A stretch of DNA of 64,000 nucleotides from Trichoplax adhaerens (lineage: Eukaryota > Animalia > Placozoa), in NCBI RefSeq assembly GCF_000150275.1, contig NW_002060981.1, positions 124,001 to 188,000 on the forward strand, given 5' to 3'. A program made the position numbers and the translations under genes. Positions 38,211 through 64,000 of this stretch are shown here, piece by piece. Positions within the stretch are counted from its first letter, which is position 1, and each line of letters opens with the position of its first letter. The notes beneath the pieces are model-generated. The model saw only the letters and a program-made list of their open reading frames with translations. It ran no database searches and was not told where the DNA came from.

Positions 38211-39188
38211 ATGGTTAAGTTCAGCCTGTGTTTTCAACTACTTTTTATCTTTGGTATCTTTAGCGCAAGTAAGCTTGTACCTGCTTGATTTTATTCATGA
38301 GTGCAGATTGAACTCTACTTGAGTATTAACGTATTTATTTCAGAATAAATATGATATTTTTTTATCTATTTTAAAGGCCACTGCTTGTCCAAATTTGAAC
38401 ATCAATGTCTGGCAGCACACAACGCTTTAAGGCATAAACATGGCGCAGCACCGTTGGTATGGAACGATAATGCTAGAAATAAGGCCCAGGTTACCGCTGA
38501 TGCAATACTCCAAGATGGACGATTTGAATATCCCGTTCGTGAAAGCCTTCAACAGAATATTTTAATGGCTAGCTCTAGTTATGCTAAGGGGATTACCGCA
38601 CAAGCAGTAACGAAAGAGTGGTATAGTGAAATTCGCTTTTATAATTTTACAAAGGGTGGATATCAACATAAAGCTAGACATTTCACTCGTGTAATTTGGA
38701 ATGGTTCCAAAGAACTTGGCTGCGCAAGAGCCTCATCTAGCAATACTGTAGTGATAGTAGCTGATTACTTTCCCAAAGGTAATGTTAAGGGCGAATTTAA
38801 AGCCAACGTTTTCCCAGTTAAAAATTCCTTCCGTTACATTGATGAAGCCGAAATGGCTCATGAGGAGGATGATATAGCCAAAACAGCGCCAGAACAAATT
38901 CCAGATAGCAGTTCTTGCAGAGGAGCAGTGGACAAAAATGGCATGTGTCGCGAAGGACTTCTAGAACGTGAGGATGATTTTACTTCTCCAACGAATATTG
39001 TCGTTTCTAAAGCCAATAACCAGGAACAAAAACATTCTAAAAAGGTTACTGACTCTAGAAAGGAGTCTAAAAAGGAGTCTAAAGAAAGTAAAACAGAATC
39101 AGACGCTTTGCCTTTGGATGCAGAAAGGATACTCGATGAAATCGAAAGCCGATTCGAAGCCGAAGAATTTCGTCCTGTGAAAGCGTAA
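38211..39188 (+). CDS. Secreted CAP-superfamily (SCP/GAPR-1/PR-1-like) protein with a charged C-terminal tail
   Basis: Exon 38211-38268 (MVKFSLCFQLLFIFGIFSAS, signal peptide, GTAAG donor) splices in phase 1 to 38377-39188: CLAAHNALRHKHGAAPLVW, WYSEIRFYNF, HFTRVIWNGSKELGCA, YFPKGN, then a ~120-aa E/D/K-rich tail. Confidence 0.88.
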
Positions 39189-42817: not shown

Positions 42818-45224
42818 TCACTTTTCAGCTTCATCTTGCTTGGCGAATGCAGCAAGGCGCTCATTTCTCTTCTCAGTGATACGATCTTCACGTCTTTGGC
42901 GAGCTGCCTTTTTCTTAGCACGACGAGCCTCGGCTTGATCCCTACAGTAGCATATTCAATTAATAAATAGTTGTAGAATGTGGCATATATCAACTATTAC
43001 AATACTTACGCAAACATCTTGGCACGAGCTTTCTCAGCTTTCTTCTTAAAGATATACTCCATAAGTACTCGCTTATTTTTGAATACGTTACCCTTGGCTT
43101 TAGCGTAATATTCATGATACCTTCCAACAGGATAAATGAAGGCGGTTATTTTGAATCTATACTCGATACTGTAGAGCACCGTCATGTCTAATAACGGAGG
43201 AAGCAGTAATTATGCTTATCACTCACATATGATTATCGATCTTCTTTGCTTCACGATATTTACGCAGTAATCTTCTCAACACACGCATCCTACGCATCCA
43301 AATAATTTTTTCTGGCATACGGGCATTTGCCGTACCTTTCCTCTTACCGTATCCTCGATGTCTACCTTTTCTGCGTGCTTCCATCGCAGTTCTTACTCTG
43401 GATCTAGAATGGATAATTTGAGGTTTTCTGATAATTAAACCATCCTTTACGAGCTTGCGGATATTTTGCCCTAGGAAAATGGATTATTTGGCTTCAGAAT
43501 AGAAGGGGATTTATTCAAATCTACATGCAGTACTGTGTTACAAAGAATTATAATATATAGAAGAATATTACTTGAATTGGCATTAGAGATTTCGTTCGTT
43601 TCATTAGGATCTAACCAGATCTTTCTTTTTCCGCACTTTAGTACGCTAGCAGCTAAACGCTTCTGCAAACGTAGGGTACTGAAATAGCAAGCATTTATTC
43701 CGTTAGGATTACTGGCAGTCTGATAACGAAGTTCACTAAAAGACTAACAATGTATGACATCAAACTGTCGATTACTCGCCTTGCAAGGCAGAGTTTTAAT
43801 TTTAAAGTACTATGGACGTCCTGAAGATACCGGTAACCCAATATTACTACTGCGATGCTAAATATTGCCTGCCGTACTGAGTGTATCGATAGTAGTAGAT
43901 GTCAGAAAGTCAGCTCCATGACGTACTGTATAATGACTTCTAAGCCCTACATTTGTTAAAGCCAAAATTGCGGAGCAACTAACACAACGATAGTTGTGAA
44001 ATTTTACAAATACTAAACAGGGCCGAAATACTTGAACTTTTTGAAATATGATCAGCTATAATTTACGATTCGCAGACGCAATCTGTGCTACGAGCATAAC
44101 AATTTCCATCCACTACATTATCCTGTAGGTGTGATTGTAAATCATAGCAAGAGTTTTATAATCTGCCTCTGTGTAGACTAGGCGTATTATATTTATTAAC
44201 TTACTAACGCAAATACGTTTGATGTTGCTACAATCACTCTATACTTCGCTATTAAATTTGTTACATCATGGATAGCAGTTGCTACGGTGAAAGAATATAT
44301 CCAAAACTGCACTCTAAAACATGAAATAGGGTATTCTCCGAATAGACGGTTTTAGTTACTGTACTGTATGGGTGGAATATACTCTTAAGTCCTAACAATG
44401 ACATCGCACTATGAGATGACTGTAGACTAGAAATGCCGGTTGACTCCATCAAATATACGCTGAAGGAAAAATTATGTTCTTAAAGTAAGAGAAGTACGCT
44501 ACAGCAATATCCGACATCACACTAAAGCGCTACCAAACATCAGAGTCAACTACATCGATTCCTTTAACCTTGTATAAGTGCTCCATAAGACGAATCTGCC
44601 ATTGTGCAGTATAAACTAAACTGAGTTGAGCACATCTATCGTCTTCTAATTAGCACTCGCCTTAGTAGTCGTTTTCAACTAAGTTCAGTCTACACTACTT
44701 TCCACTAGGAATTTAGGCCTTCCAATGAACGAGGCAAAGTACAACTGACAGATGACAGAGAGCTCAGTAAAGTAACCGATAAACTAATGAAATTAACTAT
44801 CGGAGATAGCGTTCCAATTTCAGGAAAATGATTGTAACAAGCAACAATTCTATTAGGATCGAAAGATTGATGCAGCTAATTTACGCACATGTAAAATATA
44901 ATCCAGTTTCTATAAAATATAATTCTGTACTACGATAAGCGTCGAGGATAGGACACGAGTTGTCATTATGCTAAATCAGCGAAAAATCGGTATCACGTCT
45001 ACTACTGCCTACAGTAAATCGCAATATACAGTGATGCGTTTCGGTAGTCGATTTCAGAGTTAAAATGGTTGATCAATCGGTAAAATAAGTAATAAAACTA
45101 ACAAATTTCGTTATAATCATTGATAACGCATCATTTCTTACAATTCTATGTAAGTCAATGTCAGCTATATCAACGATTTGTAGTCGTTTACGATTAAGAA
45201 AAGATTGCCATTTTCTTACCTCAT
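42818..45224 (-). CDS. RPL19: 60S ribosomal protein L19 (eL19)
   Basis: Exon 1 ATGAG (45224-45220, GCCATG context, GTAAG donor); exon 43678-43572 [26 protein letters not shown]; then [64 protein letters not shown]; stop at 42820-42818. Confidence 0.97.
43748..43880 (-). ncRNA. Candidate H/ACA snoRNA in RPL19 intron 1 (A)
   Basis: Minus strand: hairpin CAATATT..AATATTG, H box ATAGTA (43813-43808), hairpin ACTCTGCCTTGCAAGGCGAGT, ACA at 43753-43751; about 130 nt. Confidence 0.4.
44568..44710 (-). ncRNA. Candidate H/ACA snoRNA in RPL19 intron 1 (B)
   Basis: Minus strand: hairpin CTTAGT..ACTAAG, H box AGACGA (44644-44639), hairpin GTGCTC..CTGC..GCAG..GAGCAC, ACA at 44573-44571; about 140 nt. Confidence 0.4.
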
Positions 45225-45248
45225 GGCGGTGCTTGATTTTAGTATGAT

Positions 45249-45260
45249 GGAAAGAAAGAC
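45249..45260 (-). promoter_or_regulatory. 5'-TOP / TCT-like pyrimidine initiator of RPL19
   Basis: The minus strand reads GTCTTTCTTTCC about 25 nt before the ATG. Confidence 0.6.
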
Positions 45261-45395
45261 AGTAATCACATGGATCGATTTTTATGTGCGCTGGCCCTAT
45301 AGGGGGGTGATTGCAATTCGCCATCGAATTATCACATCTTCGACATAGTGAATGATACACAGGATTTGATGAATCATACTGTCGTATTTCATTGC

Positions 45396-45625
45396 CAGTA
45401 CTGGACTGTACACTATATAGTCCATTTTTTTTACCTCTACAGTACCGTATTGTACAGTACAGTACTGTATGGTACAGTCTACAGTACAGTATACAGTACT
45501 GTACTGTAGTACTGTACTGTAGAGGTAAAAGTCTTACTGTGCAGTACAGTACAGTACTGTAATGTACTGTACTGTATACTGTACTGTACTGTACAGTGAG
45601 TGCACACTGTACTGTACATTGTACA
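45396..45625. repeat. TACAG/CTGTA pentamer array upstream of RPL19
   Basis: TGTACAGTACAGTACTGTATGGTACAG...GTACTGTACTGTACAGTG, 150-400 bp upstream of the RPL19 start. Confidence 0.85.
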
Positions 45626-46984
45626 ATTCCGTTGGAGATTTTCTGGACCATGAGGTTGCTGCTACCGCCAGTGCTCGAGTAAAAGCAAACAATCGATGCA
45701 CAATTGCGCATGACTTTTCTAAACGGTGAGTCGACTCAGTATGTCTGCTGTGTTGGAGAGAGAGAGAAGGACGCGGAATGGCACTGCGTAGGTGTAGCAA
45801 AACCAATGTGCCAGCTCATTGGTTACTACATTCAACCCAGTATAGTGCACACTAGAGACCCTCTATCAAACTATCCGCTATCAGGTCTTTCATGAGCTAG
45901 CCACAGCCAGGTGGGGAAGTGTGACAGTGTTATATACTGTATTAGCGTAGAAATATCTACGTTAGGATAATTTTGTTAGCCTATCCTTATTTAGTTAACT
46001 TCTAATTTGGATATAATGTGTTTTAATATAGCACTGGCTTTTTATGACAGTGACACATGTAGACATACTGAAATCAATAGTTATATTGGGGAATGCGAAT
46101 GATCTACTTACAGTTCGAATCATGTGATTGTAACTTACTTATGGTAGATTTTAAATTATCGTGGAAATGTCTCGTGATAGGACATATCGCAAGCTGACTA
46201 TTCTGTATTAGTCATCAGATGTCCATGTTCGTAAATACAGTTATCTTAATTAGGGAGCAATAGCTAAAATTAATGTCTAATTCAGTGAATGATTCCAAAG
46301 TTAATCGTACTAACTATGACTCATGAACTATTGAGGAAGAGTATACAAATGCAGTATATGGTGCAATAAAGTTAATTCTTAAACTTAGTGTTTAAAGTAA
46401 AATACGAGGCGTCTAAATCTTTGTCTAGTCTGTTAGTAGAGCAGAAGTGTTCCTGATAGTGCTGATATCGTTCCTTGATACGTGGTTCAAGCAATTGACT
46501 TCTTGATCGTACGTTATCTTGTTACAAAGCTATTTTGTGACACCGACATAAACGGACATTGTCACATCCATTTCTACATATCAGAGAAACAATGAAATAG
46601 AGAATATTTATATTAAATTAACCTATTTATTCTCTTCGATACGAACACAGAGTGGATGCGTTTTAAATCTAGGCAACCTGCATATCTTGCTCGTTAATAG
46701 TATGCATAAGCTGTTCCAAGATCATTTATAATGCCAGGATATAATTAACAATAATAATATACTCGTACATTGTGCATATGCTATTCGAATGTTGTGATTT
46801 GTGAATATGTTTCGTTGCATATTATACATAAATAATACATCATTATTGAATATTTATTTATATTTTAACGAGCTGTACCATAATTGTCATGAACTTGTCA
46901 ACATACGAATAAATGACATATAGTTGTTAACACAGTATAAGTCATGCATCAATAACGTAAAATGGATAACCATGCAACGTAATT

Positions 46985-47190: not shown

Positions 47191-48118
47191 GCTATTCTAC
47201 GTTATAATGCTGCTTTATGTAACAATTATACTTTCAAAACACACCACTGCTATTGACTGAAATCTCTGCAGATCCTTTGTCGCACACCAACTCTGCGACA
47301 AGGGAACATAAAGTAAAAGTCTATTAGCAATTTTCTGACTTAAACGCTCTTTTACTAAACGTAAAACATATAGTAAAGTTCTGTAAAATTGAAGAATTTT
47401 ATTAGCCTAGCCACATTCATTACACAATTATACTTGAATTGTTCCCGTTTATATAGGAACCATCTAACTTGTGAACTGTAATCTAATCATTTTACCTTAC
47501 TAGAAAAGGCGTACCAAACTGAAATATTCGTAACATAGCTTTTTATCAATATACAATTTTTTTGTTTACTACCAAATTTATTGATCTATTTAATATATAT
47601 GTGTGTTTATTACTTTAAATATATTCCAGTACATACAACACGATTTACTGTATACAGTGTACAGTCTAGATATAAGTATTATATTTGCATACAATCTCGT
47701 TTGTTAAACATACATGTGTAAATACACTTAATTAAGAATTAGAGGAGTTATTAATGCCAGCATATATTCTGTAGATAGCATTTAGATTATTATTGTACTT
47801 TATATGGTGTAAGCCATGGAGATGGTCTTGATATTATGCATCATGTACAGTACCTATCAGCGAGCATCACTCTTAATTAATAGATCTACAATAAAGCAAA
47901 GCGTTGATAATAGATATATTAGAACTCTCAACTCTGTAACAGTTGCTTGTTGATAATAAAGTAAACTTTTCGAAGACCATCTATTAAATGACGGGGCTAT
48001 GATTTAGTGAATTATAATGCCATTATCTCAAATTTATCAACACATCGAAAAATCGAGTAATAATTGTAAAGATAGTATACGCTACGCATAATGCATCAAT
48101 AACCTTAAGATATAATTT

Positions 48119-51100
48119 TTAGTCATTAATATTACTGATCTTTTCATCTACAGTAACTGAAAGTACATTAGTTTTCCGTAACTTAGCGGTAAATGCACTA
48201 GGCACAGTTCCAGTGATATTAGCGTTGATACGAGCTGATCGTATTTTTCTTAAAAAGGTTGGACTAGTTAGTGTATAGAGACAAGGGTTCACGGCTGAAT
48301 TGATAGGCAACGCGAATATAATGATAAATTGCAGTGTAATTATATTTACATCTTCTGAATATGTTAATTGTAATAAAGTCATTATATAAAATGGTAACCA
48401 ACTGATTAAATCTGTCACCAAGATTAAAAGTAGTCGAATTGCCATAGCTTTATCATTAGCAGTATTTGATTTGGCAACATTTTTATGACTCTGTTGTACT
48501 GTCAAAAATATTTGTATATATAATAGTGCTGTAATAATCCAGCAACATATGGTTACAGCAATAAAGGCTACAAGCCAGTTGGCAAACGTGGAATTTGTAA
48601 GATTACTCGCCATACAGATACTACTGTATCCATATAATCGGTTCTCTGCCGAAGCGTTGATACTGCTCATAGCTGGTACACCAACGAAGATAGAACAGAA
48701 TATCCACAATGTGCACACAGTTGCTATTGCAGCTTTGGCATTAAACCTATGTCTTGAAAATGGATGGACAATACAAAACCATCTATCGAGACTGATTAAT
48801 AGCATCATAAAGACAGACATTAGGCTAGATACACAACACAGAAAGCATGCAAATGCGCAATAACCACTTGAAAGCCATGACTCCGACAATTGTGCAAATC
48901 TTCCTGTGTAGTATCCATCGGCAATAGCAATAATAAGTAAATAAATAGACATAACGAAATCTGCTATTGCTAGATTAGATATTAAAATGCGAGGGACATT
49001 ATTGCCGTGACTTTTACTTTCAAACTTATGTAAAGCAAGAACTAGGATATTGCCGATGAAAGCGAAACAGCCCACAATCCATATGAATAGCTGTAGAGAT
49101 ACGTGTGATAAAAGGTTATGGCACGTGGAGAAAGATCCTTTCTGTTCATACGGTTGACAGGTAGTAACTTTAGCAGGCACCATGCAGCATAAATAACTTC
49201 GAGTAGATAATCTAGAAAATAATAAATATGCAATGCATTCTTTAGATAAAAGTGTAAGGATCAGATGTTAGAATTATAATCATGGGAAGATAACGTATTG
49301 AACCCGGCACTGAATGATTTCTCATAGTATCTAGATTTCGCCAGGTAGCATAAGATAGACTGTACACTAGTTGTTTTGCTACTTGATTTATACACGTTAG
49401 TTAAAGGTAAGGTCGGTCCTAAAGGACCATATTATCTAAATAGTGATAAAAATTGATATTCAGGTAATGGAACAACAGATTAATTTATAATGCAATTGGG
49501 TTGCATAATTTAATTTTAGTGAAGATGCTAATTAACTTTGGCTTCCTACGCTCATCAGTAGTTCGAGTCGTACATTAGATATGTTACAGGAAGAGTGTGG
49601 GCGGCTGTTGACTAGATATTTGTTTATTATCAAAATAATGTCGCAACCCTCTGGTAGCAAAAATACTGCGCATCATTGTGGGTAAACTAGTCACTTAATT
49701 TATATCTGTACTTACACTGTTTGTAATGCAATAGCACCTGCAAATGAATCAGAAGTTATGAAGGTCAAGGAATTGTCTTTCAACGACCTGAAATAATATA
49801 TTACAATTAGTGTTAGCACATGATTAATATTACGACATTATTTCGTATTTCAATATTTTACAGTTTTAAAGAATTATACAATCGTCTATAGTCAATGAAT
49901 TGATAAGTTAACAAAGAGAATTAAAAAAATTACTTATACTATGCAGGTTTGTGTAAATGAGCATCTTTGATAGATAAAAGCAATAAACTTACAGTACTGC
50001 TAAAGTTCGCAGATTTGAAAAGCAATCTGTTATTAGATTCCTAATGCCATTGCGATCTAGATATCTGATTATTTTTTATGAATGTTTTATAGAAAAACAT
50101 AAGATGAATTTTCTTTAAATCAATTAAGAATGGTTTAAATATAAAAATAAGTAATAGCTGATCTGCTATCATTAACTTACAGGTTAGTTACACCAGGAAA
50201 AAGATACTGGAATTCGGTTTTGCAAATATCAACTAATGAATTGTTCGACATATTGCTATAAAATTAAAAAATAAAAAGTATCTTTTATATGTAGATTAAT
50301 AGATTGCATTACAGATTTTTCAACATACAGTATACATGACATATCAAGATAATAAAATTAAATTAAAGGATATATTGGTCATTTTCATACACTGTTTTAA
50401 GGCCGCTGAAGGCCAGAGTGTATTTGTTGCTAAATGTCTTTAATCCATTATTGGCCATGTTTCTAACAAATTTATACAAGTTATTATGATAAGTATTTGA
50501 GTGCAGTAAAATTATACGATTTAGTATGGATATCTGATGTGATATCTAGAAGTTCGTGATTATTGTAACCTTAATTTTGGTTAAATGATTTTTACTTAAA
50601 TAAGTTAATAATTATTTTATCGATAAAAAAGATACGATAGCAATTGCTAGTGTGAATTTATATCAGGCGTTCCGACTGATAGATAGTATGCCAGACAGTT
50701 TCTTAACTTACAAATTATTCAGTCTATAGTCATGGCTACGAAATATATCCGATGAATCCATCGTTGTAATATTATTGTTGTTAAAGGTCCTAAAAAAATT
50801 TAGTGATATTTTCACAAAGTTTACCAGCGTGGTTGTTACCGATCCTATAATTAATAACGTTTGCTTTACTTTATCTTTATTAATTAAGAGTACTACTCGC
50901 CTTGTAACATTATGAGTAAGCAACATTTGATAAACAAGGCCGGGCTAAGATATACAAAGCCCGGCGTACTAATTATGATTTCAGTAGTCCGCTATTTAGT
51001 CTTCTGATCTTAGAGTTGCAATATATTGTGTTGCAATATACTGTTCGCGTATATTGTGCAGTCAGTCTAGAATATAAGATCATTTTTTGCTATATAAAGT

Positions 51101-54100
51101 AATGTAATCTACGCCTGCTATGGGTAGCTTTGTCTGCTTAATGCTGAAGACTAGTATCTACGGTACAATTGTAAACTAGTATGTTTAATCTAGATCTTTA
51201 GGCTGATAGCTTAATATAAGTAATTTTTGACGATATTATATTGCTGTAAAGCACTTACAATGATTGGATGGTATTTCGTAAATTTCTGAAGGCCTCTGGA
51301 AATTCTTGAAGGTTATTACCAGCGAAGTTACTGTGTAATTGTCGAATAGGATTTAAGTTATTTCCATTTATTTGCATTATAACGTCAGCACTATAATCTT
51401 AGACTAATATAAATATCGCATTACACCCTTTCATTATTTACAATTTATAATAGTTGAAGACACACACGGATTCTTGGTGTATCTGTTCATTTGAAACTCC
51501 ATCAAGTAGGCAATTAAACAGATTTCTAGAACGTAACGATTGTATTTTTTGACGGATCACCATTTTAGTCAGGTTATTATAACTAAAATCACTGAAAAAG
51601 CAATAAAAAAGATCCATTATGCTAAAGGATTTTTAATATTCATGTTAGAATGAATCCTATCTGAAAGAGATGTTGACATATCTAAGGTAGGAATGAATTT
51701 GTATTAGAGCCATTACAACTTGTGACTTCAATTTTTAGAGAACAAACTGGCATGTCTACTGAATGAAGAAATTCTCTTTCCGATTTCAAAGAAAAATTGA
51801 AGCAATACTCCATATTAATAGTATAGAATTCGGAGATTGATCCTGTTGCTCTGTGTTACACTACAGTATTTTCTATGTCGAATTACTAAGGTAATGAAAT
51901 AATTGTTCTAAACGTGTCGTGTTTGGAGTAGCTATATTAAAAATGATTAGTTCTTATTGACAGTGAATATGCATGTAAATCTAAACTAAAAAATAATAAT
52001 ATGTCTCTCATGATCTAACTACATACTACATGTATTCATTCTTCGATAAAACCAAATATTGATAATCTAGTCAACAGACTAATGGAGGTGTAAGGTGATA
52101 TTGTAAGCGCTAAAGTATGGATTTCTACTTAGATAATCCACAAATTAGCTAGTGTAATAACAGATAAGAATTAAAGCATGGAATACGATATCATCAAAGT
52201 ATTAACAATCCCAATACTAGTAGAAATTAATAATTGTAACGCATATAATACAAAAATATCTTTCGATCTTGAAGAGTTATGGACTTACATTGATCTTAGT
52301 CTAAAACGTAGTAAATTTACTACTAGTTGAGAAATATCTTCTATGCCGTTGCCAGCTAAGTACCTAGAATAATCAGAATATCAATAAAATCTTGCCAAAT
52401 TCAATATTTGAGCCTCCTGTTTAAATGGTGTTCATATTATTAAGAGAATAGTTTTGCTAGAGTAAAATTTCCTTAATTTTTTGGGCTGCTTACACTTCCT
52501 CAACTTTCATTGTATTGGTTAAAATATCTTCTGCAATAACACTTTGGTAATGAGATAGTCCATTATAGCTAAAGTCACTATAAGTATGAAAAATTGTAAA
52601 GACACCATTAATGGACTGCTTTATAAGATTAAACATTTAAAATTTGTATGATTGATAAACGGATGCAAACTAGGTGCATTACAAAGATTTTAGTCTTCCA
52701 AAAGTTGGCCAGCAGTTAGACATGATTTTTGAAAAATTATTTCGAGCTACATGCCTAGATAATAAATATAAGCCATTGTACAAATTAGGCATTAAACAGG
52801 GCATACCATAATACCATTCGTTGATATCTGGCTATAATGTATGAGTTGTAGCATGAATATATAGCTACTGTTCTTAACTGAAATCATTACACTGGCACAA
52901 AGTCTAGTAAGTTGCATTACGCTGGTACGATATATAAATACGGAAATTAAACAATTCTTGAGCAGCCAGTCTCAAAATTTACCAAGTTGTAAGAAAAATA
53001 TTAGATTTTAAGGGCAGACAGTCAAGTTTCTGAAGCCGGTTAGAATTCAATGAACTGCAATAAATGATTAATACTGAGCATGCAGCATCGGTAATCAACT
53101 TATTTTGACATAAGTATGGGTAAGAATCATTGAATACTTACAGCTTCGTCAAATATCGGAGGGATCTAAAGCCATCATCACTTATAGAGGCTATTGAATT
53201 TCGTTCTAAATATCTATGAATCATAATAAAATTGTAGCATTACATATCTAAACCATTAGTACTTAAGCTAGATATATTAAATGAATATTATTAATATCTT
53301 TGTAAGAAGCACTATTTTTATCCCTACTATAGAACGATAGCTTAGTAAATGGTGCCCAATATTAGCAGATAAAATAGTTTATTATTTGAAACTATTTTTG
53401 GACATTGCAGTTATAAAATTAGACACATAAGCTGCCCAGCTGTCGACTGTAAAAATTATTCACTAACAGCTGTCCTATTGCTTAATTATAATTTCTGACA
53501 TCACTAGTCGTCTCTGGTCTAGCGCCGCCATCCTACTTATGATTATCGGGAATTCACTATAGAACCTATTTTCCGATAATCTTTTAATGTAAGTTCAAAA
53601 CAAATCTATCTAGGCTAGTTATAAGCTAAGAAGCAATCACGCTATGCAGCAGCAAGTGATCTAATTCATAATATATAACATTATTAGTGAATAGAAATAT
53701 TTTATACGGCTTCAATCTCATGATAGCATAAAACGACTGAGTCCTCTATAATGAAATTATGAAAACTGCCCAATTATTATCAATTTTATGTGCGTTTGAA
53801 AGCTAGTTACAACTTTAAACGTTACTTACAGTTCCTTAAGTTGTTTTAAGGTTGCAAAGATACTGTCAATATAAGAAAGCTTATTTCCGTTAAGATTCCT
53901 ATATTACAAGAACAATAAAAGTTTAGTAATGAATGAAGGTAGCTAATAGGCTTTCGAATATTAAAATGGAAATAGAAAAACATCGTTGTAGCTTGCCACG
54001 ATACGATCTATGCATATTTTAATCCTACAGTTTACAATCATTTATATTTTTAGAAACAAGTAGCATCTATTTACATCTGCGTAGTCTCTTGATACAGATT

Positions 54101-57100
54101 AGATTTAAGGCTATTATTTTGATCTGTTCAGAAGTACATATGCTTAGTGCCAGAAAACACTTACAGGACAGCTAGTTTAGACAAGTGATTTTGAAAAATA
54201 TCTTTGGTAATTATTATTTCACAATCTTCTAAAATTCTTTTAGAAAATAAATAATGGGATTAATTAAATACTAATAGTGAAAAATTCCCGTATAGTTACA
54301 AATATTAGTGTAATATTGAGAACTTCTTATATTCATTTGAATGAATTTGCTTTATAGGGATATGGCTTACAATGTCGTAAGTGAACTCAGTCCTTTAAAT
54401 GAATTATTATGCAAATTCAAATTTACATTTTCAGATAAGTCCCTACAAATTCGTAATTGTCAGCATGATCAGTTACAGATACTAAGTGCAAAGGCATACA
54501 TAGAGCATTATTAAGCGATGAAAAAGTGCCATAAAGTAAATAATGATAAAAATTTACGAATAAATTAGATCGACATAGGTATAGTATACGTACAAGGTCA
54601 ACAGCCTAGTAGCGTTCAGAAATACATTATTCGATATCGATTTAATACGGTTTTGTCCGAGATCACTATATTGGTATTAATTGTTAGCGATTGAATTGCA
54701 ATACATTAACAGAAATTTTATACTAAATTTAAAATAAGAATCGGCTGTGAAGATTACAGATTTTCAATGGCAGACATAGCCTGAAATTCTGCAACAGGAA
54801 TCACTTTGATGTTGTTTTTCCGTAAATTTCTACATATATGAGACATAGTTAGTAAAGAACAGAAAAATCCAAATTATTATCGATTCCAACTTAATTTAAT
54901 TACTACATTCTTAAGAATTAATAACTCTATAACCAATTTTTTATGGTGCGTTGATGATAAATGTACATAAAAATTTACGAAATTGTATTATTTAGCAAAT
55001 CCATCAGATTACTAATCATCATGAATTTGACGATTAATTATAATGATACATTTACATAGATTTCCACTGAATTTTGCTTTCCTTACTTTAGGAACTAAGA
55101 GCTCTTAGATCTATTAGAATCTAGGATATCTTAACTTGCTCTTAATTATCGTACTTTTTTGTAGCTACTTACGTATGGATAATACATTCTACTGAAATAT
55201 TTAGTGTTCAAAGATTTCAATTTCATTTTAATTTTATGTATTAACGATAGTTATAAGGCTATAATATGCCAATCTTAAATGTATATTTTATATCGTAGCC
55301 GTCATATATTGATATAAATGGATTTTAAATTCAATGTTTGAAACAATAAATGATCTTACAGGGCTTTTACGGTAGATAATCCAAATATAAAATTTATGTT
55401 TTCTAGAGAATTTTCTTGCAATATTCTGTAAAAATGTCAAAACGAAATCATTTACAGCTGCTTTGGGTATTTATTTTTATTAGAAATTATGTAATACGAA
55501 AGTAAGCGTAAGGAGAAAGCACGTTATTTTAAGATTCTGGAGTAATTAAATAATATAAATTATAAATTGAATAATGCAAGATGTTACTGATTGTCATTGT
55601 AGTGTTAATATTTGATAAATAAGATGCAATAATCTACTGGTTACGTTGAAATAATGCGATTAAATGCTTATGATGAACTGTCTAAAGCTTACAAGGTCGT
55701 TAACGAATAATTGGCCAAGGTGAAGACATTATCGTTAATTGATCTCATCCTATTTGATGACAAGTTTCTGTAAGGATAAATTATTGAAACTTATCATGTA
55801 AGTAATCTGTAGTATTTTCCAGAATAATTTTTATTATGTAGTACTTTAATGCTGAAAGATTAACGACAGCAGTAACTTACAGCACTTTTAGATTAGGTAA
55901 AGATTGAAATTGTTTTGCAAATTGGCTTGTCATGCTATTAATTCGATTTTTGCTTAAATCTCTAAACGTATTATGTTGAATAGAATTATATAATACAATT
56001 GGTAATTCCATATAACATCAACCTTAAAGGTAGTTGACTTTGCCTCACTCACAGTTCACTTAACGATGTTATATTTGCTAAAGGTATCCGGGAAAATTTG
56101 CTTATAACATTATCTGAAAGATTTCTAAAATTTTTTTCGATTATTGAAAAGCTGTAACATTAATTACAATCTATAACAGATTCTAAATGAATACGCATAC
56201 TTACAAAGATTTTATATTTCTCACTTCAAATGAGTTAATGTTTTCTATAGAGTTGCTTGATAAATCACTATTAAAAAAGAATTATTAAAAAAATAAGTTA
56301 AGAAGAATTATTAAGATAATTATTTTGCAGCACACAACATAAGATACTGTAAGATGATGTGATTGATTAACTGAAGAGTACAAGCATGTGAGGTAAATAG
56401 GAACATTTTGCACTTTACATTACATTTTAGTGAAATTAGATTGTGAAATGGAAACGTTCCAGTTGACATTCACGGTACCGGTCTTAGATAAACCCCTAAA
56501 TAGATGTTAAGGGAAAGATCGTCAAGGAAATGAATTACAGAATGTTGAGAACCAACATTATCGTAGATTAGGTAGAAAACTAAAGAATAGATAGTTTTAT
56601 TAACAAGCCGCTAATTGTTCAGTAAGAAATTTGTACGGCATATTTTATATTTAAGAGAAGTGCTATCATTTAAAAGCACTTGTTAAGGCATTTACACTAT
56701 CATGTATGGTATGTTTTCATTTATTAATGCAGATTTTATCCATATTGCAATAAATCATGCTGTGATACTTGATCAAGAAATAATGATATTGAAAATTTAG
56801 ACAATTCAAATGACTAAGCTAACTAAAAAGAAGAAAGTTATTACTAGCCAGTTATCATGATATTAATAAACGGGCCAAAGACTTTAGAAGATCAGATTAT
56901 CGTCTAGTATTGAGATAGAAACAGAGATTTACTTATTTTATATTAATTGTAAACCGCACTGTCACGGTACGCCGTTACTAATTAAGTAACTGTAAATTAA
57001 TGAATGCTTATGAATAGATAAGATAAGGTTATGTGCTATGTTTTAATGCGCTTGTAGCTGATAATAGGATGGTAGAAATGAGATAAAAATAGAAGTTGTT

Positions 57101-60100
57101 AGCAGTTAATTTACTGTAGGTTTATAAGGTGTGTTAATCTCTAAAAATTGAGCTGTATATGGACGAAGGTTAAGCGTCTTAACACCTGATAGCTTGTAGC
57201 TATCTAAGTCTGAGAATATCGACATGTATATTTAGTAATGGTATTATACTAATTAATGTAACTTGTAAAGCATGAATTCTCACTCGTTAATATTGGAATT
57301 CACTGTAGAAACCTATTTAAGCGCGTGTGTTTGTAGAATAAAGAAAGTAATTGCTCAAGAAACGGCAAGACTCATATCGTGAAGAATAGTGTAATAATTA
57401 GTCAGTTGTCTGTGGAGATCAGCCGAGAAATCGAGTTCTCAAATACTTCTCTCATAGAAACTGAAAGTACTGGGAGAAATAGCCCAAGTTTTAAGTAACT
57501 ACACTAGAGTTCTTTACTTTCCTTTGCCACAAGTGAGGGTTGTGACACGCACATGATGGAAATATAGTTTATTTCGGTTACTTGAACAATGATCACAATA
57601 TTTCTATACAGTATCATAGTTACTATTTCAAATTAAAATTATCCTGGCTATAAATATTAGTATTTTAAGATACTTGCAAGTCTAAGTCTTTGGAATCACC
57701 CGACAAGAGGGACTTTAATTTTGGCAAGCTCTTCAATGGATTTCCATCAAATTTCCTAGTTAAAGTAATTAAATGAAGTTATCAACCTAGTCGCATTAAT
57801 ATTGGTACGTCAAATAAGTCTATTAATGTGATAAAAGTAATTATAAAATATTAATGCAAGGTCAAATTTTGTATTACTTACGCTGACATTAGAGAAGATA
57901 CATTGGATAATAAACCATCAGATAGCTTTGAAATTTGATTCGATCGGACATTACTAGACGATGAGTTGCGAAAGAACGATTTTGGAGCGTTAAAATATTG
58001 GTAACCATAAATTATGAGGAATAAAATATTTGATTTTCTTAAAAAATGATTATTTTAATGATGGAAAGCTACAGTACTAACAGATGTTTCAATTTAGAGA
58101 GTCCCTGGAAATGTTTTCGCGTCAGGTTAGTTAGGAGATTCTCATCTAAATTACTATAGTCAATGGCTCAATTTAGAATTAAATGGTGAATTGGAGATAC
58201 AATGAATCTGTTTTATAATTTATTGTCAACCACATAAACTCAACACCAGTATGCTTAATTTCGGCAAAAACAGATTATAGACCAATTAAATTGATATTAT
58301 TGAAATAATATGTTTGTAAAGTGTCTTGTCCGGAATCTCAGCTCTGTAATAAGGTTCAATTCTAATTTGATAACTTATGTTTCTCTAAACTGAATAAACA
58401 AATAAACTATAGAATGATGAGGAAATTAACTTGGAAAAACATCGCATATTATATTATTAATGGTTTATCAAATGGATTTTGGTGTTACTTATTTCAGATT
58501 CTTGTAAATTACTAATAATCCACACTATGTTAGAATTCATAAAACAGATAATATACTTAATACAAGTATATACGTAAAATGTACTTGTATTGTGTAATAT
58601 GTAAGATATGATTAACTCCATCCTGTAATCTACGTTATTTTGGAACTGGATGATTCCATAACTTACAGATTAGTTACGGCTTTTACTGATAAAAAGGCTT
58701 CTTCCGAAATATGTGAAATTTTACAACCATATAAGCTCCTAAATACGAAGAAATAGGTAATAAAACGACTTATATTAAAGAATTATTTTATTTCGATCAC
58801 TAAATTACGAGACTACCAAATATTAAAAGGGAGAAGAAAAATAAAGATCTGCTTGAGACTTTGAACTAAAGATGGATAGAATTTGGCTTTCAAGTAAGAT
58901 ATATTTTCTTTGAGTATCTTTTTCAGACTCCATTATTACAGATATCTTCTATTGCTAACTATGAATTAGAATTGCATTAAAATACTAAGACCTATTTTCA
59001 TTAAAATTTCCTAAGAATTTGTAATTGCCTTATGGCAATAAATTAATCAATACAGCTAAAATAGATTAATTTCTAGCTAGAAGATATTGATTGAAGATAG
59101 CTTAATGCTTTTAATTTACTTTGAACAATGCTATATTATGAATTACTTCAATTAAGCATTGCTTCGACATACAAAGATGCCTTAGTTATTTCTATTATTT
59201 CCAAACCTCTGGTTTTAAAACTTACAGTATGTGTACTTGATTCAATCCCAAAAATGTTTCTTCGCTTAGATTGCGAAGCAAGTTTGTTGAGAGATCTCTA
59301 AATAAAATTAAACAATTAGAGGGATCGTAGGCTCACCGGTTTATGATATGATAATTTTAATTCATGTTGGCAAACCAATCAATAGACTAACATTTCATAC
59401 AGATTATTCAAGTCCTCAAAACTTCTATCTTCGATTGTCATCATACCGTTACTGAATAAATGTCTATATCATGGGTATTAATAGTTATGATTGAGGTTAA
59501 TTTACCGTAAAGGAGGTACGCTTATCTAAGTAATCTGTTTCAAAGATATTGATAGAACTGAAAAGGTTACTACATTTACAAATAAACTGAAATTTAGAAT
59601 TTAAACAACTTACAGTTGCAGTAGTTTATTTAATCCCTTAAATTGGCTTTGCTTGATATTTTTAAGGTTATTATTTTGTAGTTTTCTATAATTTTAAATC
59701 ACAGGGAAACTTTTATTTGTTATAAAAGTTCTATTACTTCCAATACAATTACTTATAGTAGAATTAAAAATATTCTGCTAATTTTGTCGGCTATAAACCG
59801 GTCCGCGAATTAAAATTTTATAATGTAGCATACAATATTCCAAGCTCCGTCAAGTTTTGAAATGAGCCAGGCTCGATGTCGGTCAGTTCGTTTCTATTTA
59901 TATATCTGAATACCCCAAAATTTAAGTTTTCAGAAAGATTATTTAAATAAAAGCCAGATAGGTTTCATTAACTTAAATTTAGTTCCTAATATCCGTTATT
60001 ACTTACAAGGATTTTAAAGATTGCAAACCACTAAGGCTATGTAATCCGATACTGATAATCTTATTACCGGTTAGCTTTCTATATATAAGATCAATTTACT

Positions 60101-62727
60101 TATCAATTATGACAATTTACCAACGCTGTTACTTATATGAATAAGCTAATGATACCTATTAGTACTTACAGTGTCTCTAATCTTGTTAGTTTAACGAATG
60201 CTTTCTTAGGTAAGGCATTTATTAGATTTGATGTTAAATCACTATTGATATTAAATTTCATTCGTTGCGAAATAGGCGCAATCAAAATAAATTGATTATT
60301 CAATTCACGATTACTGAAAAGTTTTAGATATATAACGATTATCCACTAACAGGGATTCTAAGTTTGTTAATTCATCAAATGCATCTTCATGTATAAACCA
60401 TAAATGATTTGCAGACATTTCCCTAAATTTATTCATTTGTGACAAATAACAGCAGATAGTAAGTTTTACATGACTTATAATAATTTAATGAACACCTGAA
60501 AATTTATCGATAATTTGTTACATACAAAGTTTTTAGGTTATCCAAACCCAGAAACAAGCTTGCGTTTAATACTTCTAGATTATTGTAATTCAAATTCCTA
60601 TTCGTGCAGCAAAAGTAAAATTTTCATCGCATTAAGTGAATTTTAAAGTGAATTACAAATAATTTACATCAAATTGGTTAAACTTAAGGGATTCATCATG
60701 CTACAGGTATTGCAGTAGGTCTTAGTTACTAATTGGCAATCGTATTTAATAATTGCTTCTAGTTAATGGCTTCTAATTTTTCGATGATTATTTTAAAAAT
60801 ACTAGGAGTTTTAATAACTTTAATGATAATGATGAACATTAAGTACTTATTTCTATTGTTTCATTTTACCAGACAAACTGTTACCACTATGCCTCATGAT
60901 CAATAGTAGGTTTATCAATTACAGAAATCTCGACATGAATATGTAGACAATTTTTTTATTGCATACAAAAACTTATTTAATCATAACAAAATTGAAATAG
61001 CTTTTAAATTTCTAAACAACAAGTCAATATCACGAATAATTAGGAATATACTGTACACTGGTACGAATAGGATGAAAAAGTTATGTAAATGATATTTACT
61101 ATTAAAGTAACTCCATTAACTAAATACTTACAGTGATTTAGCTTTGTAATTTGATTGAAACAAGTTCCTTTCAATAGTATCTATCTCGTTTGATGGCAAT
61201 TGGCTGATAGGTATGAAGAATGGTTAGTATTAATTTGAATATTATGAGTCGACAGACAGTGCTACAAATATGCTAGTGAAAAATTAAAATCTTTAGATTA
61301 GAAATTATGATAAAGCAGATGACACTACTGCTGGAGAAAGTGCAATAAAGTGATGAAGCTACAAGATATCCTAAATTAAGCGATAAACTTACATAGTAGT
61401 CAATTGTTTTAAGTTGGCAAAGGTTCCACTATAAAGTTTTACTATATTGTTATTTTCTAACATTCTATAACGAAATGATGATAATAGGCATATAATTACA
61501 ATACTGCAGAACATGAATAAAACTGCCAGAATTAGTTACATTTTGCCGATTGATTGTAGTTTTTGAAAGGCTTGAGGATGGATATCAGTTATCTTATTAT
61601 TATTTAGATCTCTAATAGCAAAAATGAGATAAAAATATGACCAACGAATTATTATTGCCTTATAAGATACTTATCTATGTAAGTGTAGAAATTTCAATGT
61701 TACAGAAACGTGAAACCTACAATTTGTTTATTTTAGCAATATATCCTAGCGAGTATTGTGAAATTTGCGTCATAGAGTTGGTATCCATAGAGCTATATTT
61801 TAAAGTAAGCAACAATCTTGTTAATTTTGATAGAATAGCAGTAATGTTGTATAAATATAAGCTTTAATTTTCATGTTTTAGATGCTATTATTATTAAGTA
61901 AGTGGCTTTATTAAGCTAGCTTATTGTTGGTCACAGTGTAATGAGTTTACACTGTTAGGCTTCTACTGCTATTGATCCGATCGAAAGTTTCCGGTTGGAT
62001 CGTTTCGATGTGATTTGTATCTAGCCTTCTATTGAATTAAGAAATATGCATGTCAACGTTAATAAGGCATTGGACGTATTATTGCATTAAATACGAAAGA
62101 TTTGCACATTTGGCTAGAATCATAATTTTGTTTCATTTACTAAACAATGGCAATGACGTCAGGTATAATGCTTTATTCTTACATCGTTATGAGGTTGCTC
62201 AAATTTTGAAATGTTCCAGATTTTAATTCTATTATGGAATTGAACCCTAAATTGCTAATTGAAAAAATTATCGTCGTATTATATAAACGGAAAAAAGAAA
62301 ACAAAAAGGCAGAGCTTCCATATTTCGGCTAACATCGTTTGTATATATTGCAGATCGGTGAAGGCTTGAAAATGAATTCCACTTATTGAATTCCTGTATA
62401 AATTCCTAATGTATTGATATATTGAACGGTTCTTTCATTAAGTATTAAATAGTAAAATACGTATTTAAACAAGTTATAGTAACACTGTTTTTGTATTCTG
62501 ACGTTTGAGGTAAAGTTAATGCTATAGTATTTCAAACTGTGGATGTATAGTTATAGTATATTATCTCATAGCAAAATGCTCGATAGAATTATACACTTAT
62601 CATAGAAATGCAATTATAGTTAAATGTACATAAATTTGAATATTAATTGCTTACAAGACTTTCAAATTCGGTGTATTTCTAAATGCTCCAGCCGGAATAA
62701 TTTCAATGTTGTTATTGGATAAGTCTC
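48119..62727 (-). CDS. Giant leucine-rich-repeat GPCR (LGR, relaxin-receptor/GRL101-like 7TM and hinge) with ~43 single-LRR exons; 5' end unresolved
   Basis: The terminal exon 49211-48119 encodes hinge YLCC..CQP..STCHNLL and a rhodopsin-type 7TM (GNILV, NLAIADF, SLDRW, CMA, TDLISWLP, LPINSAVNPCLYT). About 43 upstream AG/GT-flanked exons, mostly 63-84 nt (modal 72) and almost all phase 2-2, each read xLxxNxIxxI...F..L..L..L (e.g. 62727-62656 DLSNNNIEIIPAGAFRNTPNLKV; 59905-59834 YINRNELTDIEPGSFQNLTELGI; 49787-49716 SLKDNSLTFITSDSFAGAIALQT). The splice path through ~56500-57600 is uncertain. Confidence 0.85.
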
Positions 62728-62830
62728 TATAATAAGTAAGAATGTTTAATATTAGGTTAGTACTAAGGTTAAGTCACTGCTATTATCTGTCAAAATTTTG
62801 TATTTATAAACTGATTTGTAGACAGACAGT

Positions 62831-63711
62831 TTGGGCATAAATCTTCAGAACATAATAAATCATAATTTTAAATTCCGATACATGCGTAAGTAAAACTGAA
62901 TGTAGTATATTTTATATGATGCACAATAGTATCGATAATTTTAAAACCTATAATAAATATGATAGTGTCAAAGTGTGTACTTCCAAACTTGGCATTTTTT
63001 AATCACTAGATATTTCGTGCAAAATCTTTATCTTATCTTTAATTGAATTATTTATGAAATCTGTTACTTTGGTGTAATGTAACTAGTATTGTGATTGTAG
63101 ACTGCTAGCCATGTTTAGTATAATGTACGGTAGATATTATCCTAAGATATATTTGGTAGCTATAACTATAGACTATAGTGGTATAGACTCTATGCTAGAG
63201 TACAGATGACTATATACAGCAAGGTGTTGAGTTACTAATAAGGCTATAGGTAAAAATAGAACTGTAAATCATATATTAGGATATGGTTAATTCATTGTAC
63301 TTTGGCTGATGTGAATAATGTCTACATAAGTACTGTAGTCGTATCCATATTGGATTAATGATGGTCCGCAGTAGAATAGTCTGACTAAGAATAATTTAAC
63401 TATGTGTGATATAAGGTAAAAGGTTGCCATGCGGATTGTAGCTGCGAATGCTACGAAAAGTATAAAAGCATGCAACTTTAGATTATTCAGTTAGTTCGTT
63501 CTAGAAGTCTTTAGTAGTAGTATTCGGCTAGAGTAGAGCTGTGTAGTTAATCTTTGTATAAGATTCAATAAAGCCCTTGTTTTTCAAAAATTTGGAATCT
63601 AGTGATTGGTATATATCACATTTGGGCATAAAGTTTCAGAATGTAGCGAATTATAAGTATGAATTCCGATATATGGGTGAGTAAAACCACATGCAGTATA
63701 TTGTATATGAT
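62831..63711. repeat. Diverged ~90-bp direct repeat pair (62831-62920 and 63622-63711)
   Basis: TTGGGCATAAA..TTCAGAA..AATTCCGATA.ATG.GT.AGTAAAAC..ATG.AGTATATT.TATATGAT is present in both copies. Confidence 0.7.
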
Positions 63712-64000
63712 ATAATAACATCCAAAATTTTCTTAAGCCTATAGTCAGCATGATAGAATAAATTCAGATAGTTGAATAGAAATAAACCAAAAACCAACTT
63801 AAAATTTTAGCCCTTTAAAAATTGAACTTTGCTTGATTTGCACATCTTATGAAGTAGCTTTAAATAGCAGCAGTAAGATGAGGTTGTTGTCATGAACTAG
63901 CTCAGAGTACCTGCAACTATCAGTAAGTGTTTCTCAAAAGTTGTGTTTTTATCTGGAGACTAGATGAAGTACTGCATAATAAAGTAGTTTTAATTCTAAT

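Follow-up and report, generated by a model that had tools for sequence, protein, structure and literature searches.

The locus described here, in the placozoan Trichoplax adhaerens, is probably best explained as a whole by one intact, protein-coding gene of the LGR type, which forms part of a placozoan-specific expansion of these receptors. This giant LRR-GPCR gene is encoded on the minus strand, which the earlier note on this DNA left unstated, and comprises 55 exons spanning ~21.8 kb. Within the window, i.e., the whole stretch of 64,000 nucleotides that was analysed, 42 exons of one LRR each (62726 to 49716), two irregular Cys-containing exons and one last exon are found (Table 1). Contrary to what was supposed earlier, 62727 is not where the gene begins; the first in-window exon starts one base lower, at 62726, and ten more exons lie past the window end (base 64000). 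These are eight further LRR exons, an LRRNT exon and a signal-peptide exon, all at most 5.9 kb out, and the 5' end probably lies ~5.9 kb past that base.

When joined, the 55 exons give a stop-free chain of 5163 nt with a frame of 1720 codons, in DNA of ~30% G+C. Canonical AG/GT borders are present at all 54 introns (median length 150 nt), and the donor reads GTAAGT in 23 of them. The signal-peptide exon (phase 0 to 1) and the LRRNT-like exon that follows it (phase 1 to 2) both fit the chain, the sole Pfam match of the latter being LRRNT at a below-threshold E of 0.047. The predicted protein of ~1720-1728 residues carries ~50 LRRs, one per small exon. It starts with the signal peptide and an LRRNT-like N-cap, followed by 27 LRRs, an irregular Cys-containing segment of 56 residues, 23 more LRRs, one of which has an insertion, a short hinge with four Cys and a 7TM domain of the rhodopsin type. 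No hydrophobic segments occur in it besides the signal peptide and the seven TM helices. All 50 LRR exons are of phase 2-2. The 42 in the window measure mostly 72 nt (~30-31 exons), with ~3-4 of 75 nt, two each of 78 and 81 nt, and single exons of 63, 66, 69, 84 and 126 nt. Thus, the earlier description of a giant LGR-type receptor, in which about 43 short, symmetric, one-repeat exons lead to a single 7TM exon, is borne out, and so is its remark that the repeats far outnumber those of the glycoprotein-hormone and relaxin receptors.

Table 1. Exons of the receptor gene inside the window, in the order of transcription.
Feature	Position	Strand	Length (nt)	Phase	Remarks
LRR exon 11	62655..62726	-	72	2-2	first in window
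LRR exon 12	62334..62405	-	72	2-2	
LRR exon 13	62183..62254	-	72	2-2	
LRR exon 14	61951..62028	-	78	2-2	tandem acceptor 3 nt downstream (62025) gives 75 nt
LRR exon 15	61721..61792	-	72	2-2	
LRR exon 16	61540..61611	-	72	2-2	
LRR exon 17	61393..61464	-	72	2-2	
LRR exon 18	61132..61203	-	72	2-2	then 534-nt intron
LRR exon 19	60526..60597	-	72	2-2	
LRR exon 20	60351..60422	-	72	2-2	
LRR exon 21	60170..60241	-	72	2-2	
LRR exon 22	60007..60078	-	72	2-2	
LRR exon 23	59834..59905	-	72	2-2	sole LRR exon in public model P0160
LRR exon 24	59614..59685	-	72	2-2	
LRR exon 25	59392..59463	-	72	2-2	
LRR exon 26	59226..59297	-	72	2-2	then 487-nt intron
LRR exon 27	58667..58738	-	72	2-2	Cys replaces conserved Asn; then 513-nt intron
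LRR exon 28	58082..58153	-	72	2-2	
LRR exon 29	57882..57953	-	72	2-2	final regular repeat of first block (27 LRR exons, including 8 outside window)
Irregular exon 30	57674..57755	-	82	2 to 0	LRR-like start (..DGNPL..); first half of upstream 'cap'
Irregular exon 31	57518..57603	-	86	0 to 2	three Cys (CxxC ... LTC); then 1250-nt intron
LRR exon 32	56205..56267	-	63	2-2	66 nt at matching place in paralogues A and B
LRR exon 33	56053..56124	-	72	2-2	
LRR exon 34	55881..55961	-	81	2-2	also 81 nt in paralogues A and B
LRR exon 35	55693..55767	-	75	2-2	
LRR exon 36	55360..55425	-	66	2-2	also 66 nt in paralogues A and B; then 530-nt intron
LRR exon 37	54758..54829	-	72	2-2	
LRR exon 38	54594..54665	-	72	2-2	
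LRR exon 39	54371..54442	-	72	2-2	
LRR exon 40	54165..54236	-	72	2-2	Cys replaces Asn
LRR exon 41	53830..53898	-	69	2-2	
Possible LRR exon 42	53500..53580	-	81	2-2	weak acceptor (AAAAG), weak donor (GTCAGA), poor LRR consensus
LRR exon 43	53142..53213	-	72	2-2	
LRR exon 44	52983..53054	-	72	2-2	
LRR exon 45	52683..52754	-	72	2-2	
LRR exon 46	52494..52577	-	84	2-2	
LRR exon 47	52289..52363	-	75	2-2	then 697-nt intron
Irregular LRR exon 48	51442..51591	-	126 or 150		downstream 'cap'; in-frame donors 51466 (126 nt, GTGTGT) and 51442 (150 nt, GTAAAT)
LRR exon 49	51259..51330	-	72	2-2	then 469-nt intron
LRR exon 50	50712..50789	-	78	2-2	78 nt at same rank in paralogues A and B
LRR exon 51	50391..50462	-	72	2-2	
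LRR exon 52	50181..50255	-	75	2-2	75 nt and similar ..NN.L..IC.. sequence in paralogues A and B
LRR exon 53	49993..50064	-	72	2-2	
LRR exon 54	49716..49787	-	72	2-2	last repeat; then 504-nt intron
Last exon 55	48119..49211	-			hinge, 7TM, C-terminal tail; stop codon 48121-48119

The repeat is written into the exon borders themselves. Every codon formed at a junction (two bases from one exon and one from the next) encodes L, I, V, F or W, the residue with which the hydrophobic positions of the LRR motif begin. As a control for chance, a strict pattern was defined as AG, then 72 open nt in phase 2-2 with xLxxNxLxxL, then GT. The minus strand between 49200 and 62800 contains it 29 times, the plus strand and the remaining 48 kb of the window not once, while shuffled sequences average 0.015. 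The scaffold positions are conserved, position 6 being N in 32 of 34 exons, whereas all the others are highly variable, in line with the divergence noticed at first. The nucleotide identity among LRR exons is 40% on average and 57% at most, and neighbouring pairs are no more similar than distant ones. Judged by this identity, the exons are old and are not interchangeable look-alikes.

The architecture of the gene is shared with its relatives. Two gene-length paralogues on contig C1380, A and B, have ~35-40 one-LRR exons of phase 2-2 each, and the exons of odd length stand in the same order in all three genes, namely 63/66, 72, 81, 75/69 and 66 in the middle and 78, 72, 75, 72 and 72 at the end. 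Such agreement argues for a fixed architecture and against the earlier proposal that the exons are interchangeable. Structure prediction had been suggested as a check. For another paralogue, P0009, the AlphaFold model (mean pLDDT 77) displays a strand periodicity of 24 residues followed by seven helices; the best match is full-length LGR4 (E 7e-30), and the LRR part matches the ectodomains of TLR8, TLR13 and TLR3.

The last exon indicates the receptor family. Its domain is recognized as Pfam 7tm_1 (E 3e-29), its DRW and NPxxY motifs are intact, and the preceding hinge is short with four Cys (YLCC..P.KV..C ... C). Among solved structures, RXFP1 is the closest (9e-35), followed by TSHR, LHCGR and FSHR, and other class A receptors appear only from 3e-13. 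The exon has 103 matches in the T. adhaerens genome, of which more than 60 are nearly full-length, and it shares 43-57% identity with many paralogues that have been named (TRIADDRAFT_* and 'GRL101-like [Trichoplax sp. H2]'). According to a review, T. adhaerens possesses 46 LGRs, of which 41 (Tadh-LGR6 to 46) are placozoan-specific, with a hinge of their own and an unusually high LRR number; Tadh-LGR15, for example, has 34 LRRs (PMC9545775). With the same genome, more than 60 paralogues, and the relaxin, TSH, LH and FSH receptors as closest relatives, the gene belongs to this already published expansion (PMC9545775). No match to one of the Tadh-LGR numbers was obtained.

The earlier note had seen in the array a possible combinatorial receptor, wherein regulated or stochastic skipping of phase 2-2 LRR exons creates many ectodomains on one signalling module, with a diversity like that of Dscam or the VLRs. 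Since all 50 LRR exons are symmetric, any subset of them does keep the frame, and in the public model P0160, exon 23 is followed directly, and in frame, by the 7TM exon. Possible variant sites exist at the tandem acceptors of exon 14, the two donors of exon 48 and the weak exon 42, which is the least certain exon of the chain and the likeliest optional one. Low-level, in-frame skipping of LRR exons is known in mammalian LGR5 (PMC4891500, PMC11678308), and placozoans lack canonical TLRs (PMC6321704), which makes a family of LRR-based sensors plausible. Nevertheless, frame symmetry is common to paralogues A and B and is an automatic by-product of growth by exon duplication. Vertebrate LGR genes have the same symmetric LRR exon phase. 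The exons are old and dissimilar regardless of adjacency, and their odd lengths keep their order in the paralogues. A Dscam-type shared element or intron complementarity was looked for in the 54 introns, where no motif is common to more than three and no inverted repeats were found. Donors are strong and introns short, and short introns favour intron definition, under which exon skipping is rare. Unlike a VLR locus, the gene is complete in the germline and has canonical splice sites throughout, and more than 60 paralogous genes already supply diversity. Nothing was found in support of combinatorial mixing, which we consider very improbable, though an exon may occasionally be skipped.

It is very unlikely, too, that we see here a family relic that is unexpressed or has recently been inactivated. 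Several paralogous 7TM exons of the genome do contain stop codons, and the only public protein here is P0160, of 345 aa, in which exon 23 is joined directly to the 7TM exon; this model is taken for a prediction artefact. The unbroken frame over 55 exons in such A+T-rich DNA, the retained splice sites and the retained LRR scaffold residues would be unexpected if the gene were not maintained by selection. Furthermore, an unrelated metagenome assembly contains a relative whose 7TM domain is 75% identical.

The two cap-like regions named earlier (~51466-51591 and ~57520-57735) are indeed irregular, Cys-containing exons; however, neither exons 30 and 31 nor exon 48 match any LRRCT or LRRNT model of Pfam, and their places correspond to irregular repeats kept in the paralogues. 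The insert at the position of exon 48 is a feature across the receptor family, and the longer form of this exon (donor 51442) adds eight residues, including a second Cys, like the paralogue proteins. Against the idea that the LRR exons upstream of ~57600 form a separate gene, paralogue proteins align straight across. P0011 (model 387-1705), P0151 and P0009 are each collinear with the local model, in single stretches, over the irregular segment, and P0151 also has the LTC-x-K-x-DLS motif of exon 31. Together with the odd-length exon order of the two paralogues, this points to one gene with a fixed order of repeats. Two adjacent genes, a secreted LRR protein ending near 57518 and a shorter LGR gene starting in the 1250-nt gap before 56267, are highly unlikely: the intron after exon 31 is the longest in the window and reading through its donor meets an immediate stop, but so does read-through wherever a phase-2 exon is followed by a GTAA donor, the frame runs unbroken from exon 31 into exon 32, no signal-peptide-like start exon was found in this or any other long intron of the gene, and no TM segment follows the first LRR block.

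For the single LGR-type gene, the following course of events can be proposed. Duplication of a phase 2-2 exon of 72 nt would have built the array in the distant past. The gene is presumably expressed, and all its LRR exons would normally be spliced in, in fixed order. The long solenoid may bind a large ligand, a protein or another macromolecule, on its variable faces, and the 7TM domain would relay the signal to G proteins. Diversity of recognition in Trichoplax would then come from dozens of germline paralogues and not from isoforms of one gene.

The resemblance to Dscam1 and the lamprey VLRs goes no further than the broad concept of one receptor served by many alternative modules. The gene has neither the clusters of similar alternative exons and the docking or selector intron elements of Dscam1, nor the incomplete germline gene with flanking cassettes of the VLRs. 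The repeat arrays of Tetrahymena and Ectocarpus resemble it in gene structure, as each exon, of fixed length, holds one repeat and the arrays grew by exon duplication; in Tetrahymena at least, the introns are of phase 2 and the junction residue is split between adjoining exons. For Ectocarpus, it has been speculated in print that the cassettes could give adaptive-like variability. Some exons of these arrays are young and near-identical, and non-coding spare exons occur as well, whereas the Trichoplax exons are old and diverged; the arrays also belong to other protein contexts, with no GPCR.

Toll and TLR ectodomains are likewise large solenoids of 24-residue LRRs, and the LRR part of the P0009 model superposes on those of TLR8, TLR13 and TLR3. 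In the multiple-cysteine-cluster Tolls, such as Drosophila Toll, internal Cys clusters break the LRR array, as in the present gene. However, its internal segment fits no LRRCT or LRRNT model, and the receptor would signal through a 7TM domain in place of a single-pass TM helix and TIR.

The bilaterian LGRs (FSHR, LHCGR and TSHR of type A, LGR4-6 of type B, RXFP1/2 of type C) likewise unite an LRR ectodomain, a hinge and a class A 7TM domain in one chain, with LRR exons of ~72 nt, and RXFP1, the glycoprotein hormone receptors and, for P0009, LGR4 are the nearest matches. They have 9-18 repeats against ~50, hinge signatures and (in type C) an LDLa module that are missing here, and known ligands, i.e., glycoprotein hormones, R-spondins and relaxins, where the Trichoplax receptor has a presumed large ligand only.

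The closest likeness is to the placozoan-specific Tadh-LGRs of the same organism, which have the short Cys-rich hinge (YLCC..P..V..C..C) and a very long, pure-LRR ectodomain without LDLa or other modules. In the available part of the review, no mention was found of the one-repeat-per-exon, all-phase-2-2 structure or of two irregular segments, and the receptor shown there has 34 repeats, compared with ~50 in the present gene (PMC9545775).

A 382-codon open frame on the window's minus strand encodes a 7TM domain of the rhodopsin family in full (Pfam 7tm_1), and no long open frame is seen on the plus strand of the gene region. The same strand shows, upstream (5') of the 7TM frame, a series of short open segments flanked by AG and GT, each of which encodes one LRR of the 24-residue type (LxLxxNxIxxIxxxxFxxLxxLxx). 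Forty-two such exons could be chained, and all 42 are in phase 2 at both ends. The two irregular exons lead, as a pair, from phase 2 to phase 2, and the last exon is again entered in phase 2, at 49211. The codons split by the junctions are those of L, I, V, F or W throughout, i.e., the first hydrophobic residue of the repeat. A strict exon pattern was matched 29 times on the minus strand of the gene; neither strand of the window had any other match, and shuffles gave about 0.015 matches. Thus, the array described in the earlier note, of about 43 short one-LRR exons leading to one 7TM exon, is real and was accurately counted (42 LRR exons and two irregular ones).

The chain does not end with the window, which is C1376:124001-188000. 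In the next 10 kb (locus L014), it is continued by eight further phase 2-2 LRR exons, with L or I at the junction codons. Upstream of these is an N-cap-like exon that is left in phase 2 and has the C-x-C ... C ... L..IP pattern usual in LRR N-caps; its sole Pfam match is a below-threshold one to LRRNT (E 0.047). The first exon has an ATG and a hydrophobic, signal-peptide-like core, and its phase-1 donor is compatible with the phase-1 acceptor of the N-cap exon. A spliced model was built from the window and the locus sequence; on it, the frame was checked, motifs were counted and BLAST was run against related proteins. The input to database searches and folding was single exons (the 7TM, the LRRNT-like and the two irregular ones) or paralogue proteins. 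The 55 exons, when joined, give 5163 nt without a stop, and the chain predicted from this genomic sequence has 1720 residues, or 1728 if exon 48 takes its better donor, 51442. The hydrophobic segments of the model are the signal peptide and seven helices, with no others, and its ectodomain has 25 N-glycosylation sequons.

The introns hold a few features of their own. A 70-codon open segment, whose nature is not assigned, lies inside a 1239-nt intron of the 5' part. Within the 1459-nt intron upstream of exon 11 there is a 109-nt direct repeat (75% identity), the only DNA repeat detected in 48000-64000, which may be a small dispersed element. Weak LRR-like open segments, either without usable splice sites or with stops, are also seen in the unusually long introns of the array (450-700 nt); these may be remnants of decayed repeat exons.

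Coordinates of the receptor gene, its neighbours and its paralogues (plain numbers count within the window; C1376 is the contig of the window, L014 the locus just past its end and C1380 a contig with giant paralogues)
Feature	Location	Strand	Remarks
7TM open frame	48122-49267	-	
Chain of 42 LRR exons	62726 down to 49716	-	
Irregular exons	57755-57674, 57603-57518	-	
5' part of gene	L014:186-5893 = C1376:188186-193893		signal-peptide exon (near C1376:193809-193893), LRRNT-like exon and eight phase 2-2 LRR exons; introns up to 1459 nt
Public protein P0160	59834-59964, 48119-49211		345 aa
Open segment	~L014:2622-2831		70 codons
Direct repeat	62812-62920, 63603-63711		
Weak LRR-like segments	50487-50602 and other long introns, e.g. 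59088-59161		
Tandem repeat	45438-45618		10-15-nt unit, 11-17 copies, ~70% matches
Artificial open frames	45076-45815	-	
C-type lectin	4670-5170	-	exon-sized open frame, Pfam match
DM10 domain	23851-24321	+	exon-sized open frame, Pfam match
Ribosomal L5 C-terminal domain	33383-33853	+	exon-sized open frame, Pfam match
CAP (cysteine-rich secretory protein) domain	38385-39188	+	exon-sized open frame, Pfam match
Gene-length paralogues	C1380 ~25.3-46.7 kb and ~66.8-87.5 kb		35-40 one-LRR exons each
Paralogous receptor cluster	C1380 ~1-90 kb		
7TM fragment	C1380:51836-52240		with stop codons

Around the gene, the C-type lectin, DM10, ribosomal L5 and CAP genes are ordinary neighbours with no visible tie to the receptor gene. 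A tandem repeat with a TACAGTACTG-like unit lies downstream, about 2.5 kb from the stop codon of the gene, and gives rise to long artificial open frames.

The sole public protein of the locus, P0160, is 100% identical to the model over the 7TM part. It is made up of a few residues from the intron before exon 23, then exon 23 and then the 7TM exon. As exon 23 is joined directly to the 7TM exon, 31 exons and the signal peptide are omitted, and P0160 is probably a gene-prediction artefact. Since it has a single LRR exon besides the 7TM exon, the present reconstruction enlarges the known product five-fold. This suggests that the public gene models of placozoan LGRs may be badly truncated.

The 7TM domain matches Pfam 7tm_1 across the whole profile (E 3.3e-29), has seven hydrophobic segments and keeps the DRW and NPxxY motifs. 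Its nearest solved structures are RXFP1 (9e-35), followed by TSHR, LHCGR and FSHR (all 1e-25 or better); the somatostatin and serotonin receptors come next at 3e-13. This wide gap sets the LGRs above the other class A receptors as its relatives. In the predicted chain, the same polypeptide has a tandem-LRR ectodomain behind the signal peptide, with a frame that is unbroken and collinear with the annotated paralogue proteins. Between the LRRs and TM1 there is a Cys-rich hinge; four of the 40 residues at the start of the last exon are Cys. The hinge motif YLCC..P.KV..C ... C is common to the gene and to P0009, P0011 and P0151, three annotated paralogue proteins of Trichoplax sp. H2, and its four Cys do not vary among 12 aligned paralogues (C709, C710, C719 and C731 of P0009).

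The hallmark of type C LGRs and GRL101, an LDLa domain N-terminal to the LRRs, with or without CUB, is absent from the gene, where the LRRNT-like exon comes directly after the signal-peptide exon, with the LRR exons next. Similarly, P0009 has Pfam matches to LRR and 7tm_1 and nothing else. The term 'GRL101-like' is a name given by sequence similarity, not by architecture. The single-pass TM and TIR of Toll-like receptors are absent as well; the C-terminal part is the 7TM domain, whose helices are the only hydrophobic segments after the LRR blocks. In PMC9545775, it is reported that T. adhaerens has 46 LGRs; 41 of them are specific to placozoans and combine a Cys-rich hinge of their own with 'an unusually high number' of LRRs. 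The present Trichoplax gene has this hinge type and 50 LRR exons. The names of its paralogues, its 7TM relatives, the shared hinge Cys and the high LRR number place it in this published family. It is a very large member of the known placozoan LGR expansion, regular in other respects. Placozoan LGRs are candidate sensors of large ligands, food or microbes in an animal that has neither neurons nor canonical Toll-like receptors.

The family is a large one. A search of the 105.6-Mb genome with the 7TM exon gave 103 matches. More than 60 are nearly full-length, with 35-57% identity, and many of the matches are clustered, with nine on contig C1380. The matching public proteins are named either TRIADDRAFT_* [Trichoplax adhaerens] or 'G-protein coupled receptor GRL101-like [Trichoplax sp. 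H2]'. The receptor cluster on C1380 includes two giants, has one 7TM exon just 8.6 kb after another and contains a 7TM fragment with stop codons; it looks like a birth-and-death array. An orthologue was sought in the sister strain, Trichoplax sp. H2: the 7TM region of P0011 gave only seven proteins in a word-indexed search, and a search with the 7TM exon among proteins of 210-668 aa returned only P0160 and paralogues. The best outside relative, the metagenome protein P0001 (75% identity), is on a 1.1-kb contig without an LRR exon.

Four results argue that the exons upstream of about 57600 and the 7TM exon would form one gene, as read from the genomic sequence. The frame continues unbroken from exon 30 through 31 to 32. 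A stop is met on reading through the donor of exon 31, as at most exons here, and it is trivial because a phase-2 exon is followed by GTAA. No start exon with a signal-peptide-like core was found in the nine long introns scanned, including the 1250-nt one. Further, blastp gave single collinear alignments across the irregular region, in which model residues 387-1705 align with P0011 1-1221, 463-1670 with P0151 and 528-1720 with P0009; P0151 even has the landmarks ..DGN.L.. and ..LTC.K.DLS.N.. of the irregular segment. The frame, the start-exon scan and the collinear paralogues thus agree on a single gene, as was assumed earlier. When the model was aligned to the paralogue region by tblastn, the LRR exons could not be mapped one to one and the irregular segment had no match. 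As the repeats cross-match at 25-50% identity, exon-length order and whole-protein blastp were used instead.

The earlier note had also placed Cys-containing caps at two points of the array. Irregular exons are indeed present at both, and exon 48, the downstream one, is an insert at a matching distance from the membrane in all the paralogue proteins compared; their identity as caps found no support, as Pfam gave no cap family and no LRRCT or LRRNT match at either place. The AlphaFold model of the paralogue P0009 (mean pLDDT 77) has a regular 24-residue strand periodicity broken by lower-confidence regions, two of which are taken to be the two irregular places. Its best match is full-length LGR4, and its LRR part matches the ectodomains of TLR8, TLR13 and TLR3. 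Fifty such repeats in a single arc would close on themselves; the block of 27 repeats and that of 23 may each form an arc of its own.

The phase 2-2 symmetry is shared by both gene-length C1380 paralogues that were read, and it is the expected outcome when one symmetric exon is duplicated. The gene is a clear case of a protein solenoid grown in this manner. The repeats have since diverged, with a mean nucleotide identity of 40% between LRR exons (maximum 57%), and neighbours are no more similar than distant exons. The exons of odd length hold their rank across paralogues, with 63/66, 72, 81, 75/69 and 66 in mid-array and 78, 72, 75, 72 and 72 before the 7TM exon; the repeats therefore have a positional identity. 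Of the earlier picture of interchangeable cassettes, the frame symmetry stands, while the divergence and the fixed order of odd-length exons speak against interchange.

On a combinatorial reading, drawn from the arithmetic of the frame alone, the subset of the ~50 LRR exons that is skipped would differ between individual cells or between conditions, and many ectodomains would be displayed on one signalling module, perhaps likewise in dozens of paralogues. If true, this would matter greatly, since a nerveless, TLR-less animal would gain a diverse repertoire for sensing or immunity. We consider it very improbable, as the indirect evidence speaks against it. The donors are strong (GTAAGT in 23 of 54) and the introns short, with a median of 150 nt; short introns favour intron definition, and exon skipping is then uncommon. 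There are no Dscam-type clusters of similar alternative exons, given the low identity even between neighbours. No inverted repeats were found in the gene region, and 10- or 12-mers, complements included, recur in 3 of the 54 introns at most, hence there is no Dscam-like docking or selector system. A VLR-like assembly, from an incomplete germline gene and flanking cassettes without splice sites, is ruled out as the germline gene is complete, with AG and GT bounding every LRR unit. In mammalian LGR5, in-frame skipping of LRR exons is known as a minor event (PMC4891500, PMC11678308). Small-scale variation of the present gene is plausible at exon 42, which is weak, at exon 48 with its two donors and at exon 14 with its tandem acceptors.

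Growth by duplication of one symmetric exon, the reading preferred here, can be set beside known systems. The vertebrate glycoprotein hormone receptor genes have LRR exons of the same phase. Among 182 related proteins compared, the present model is the richest in LRR motifs, with 44 by a strict pattern as against at most 31. Giant relatives in crinoids and Nematostella (2000-3300 aa) have few LRRs and owe their size to MAM, CUB, LDLa and lectin domains. Tadh-LGR15, the example shown among placozoan LGRs in PMC9545775, has 34 LRRs, compared with about 50 here. One repeat per exon is also seen in the LRR arrays of Tetrahymena, where the exons are of exactly 90 bp and more than 96% have phase 2 introns between them (PMC6564038), and in those of Ectocarpus, with 72-nt exons, for which a similar 'adaptive' speculation is in print (PMC3341825).
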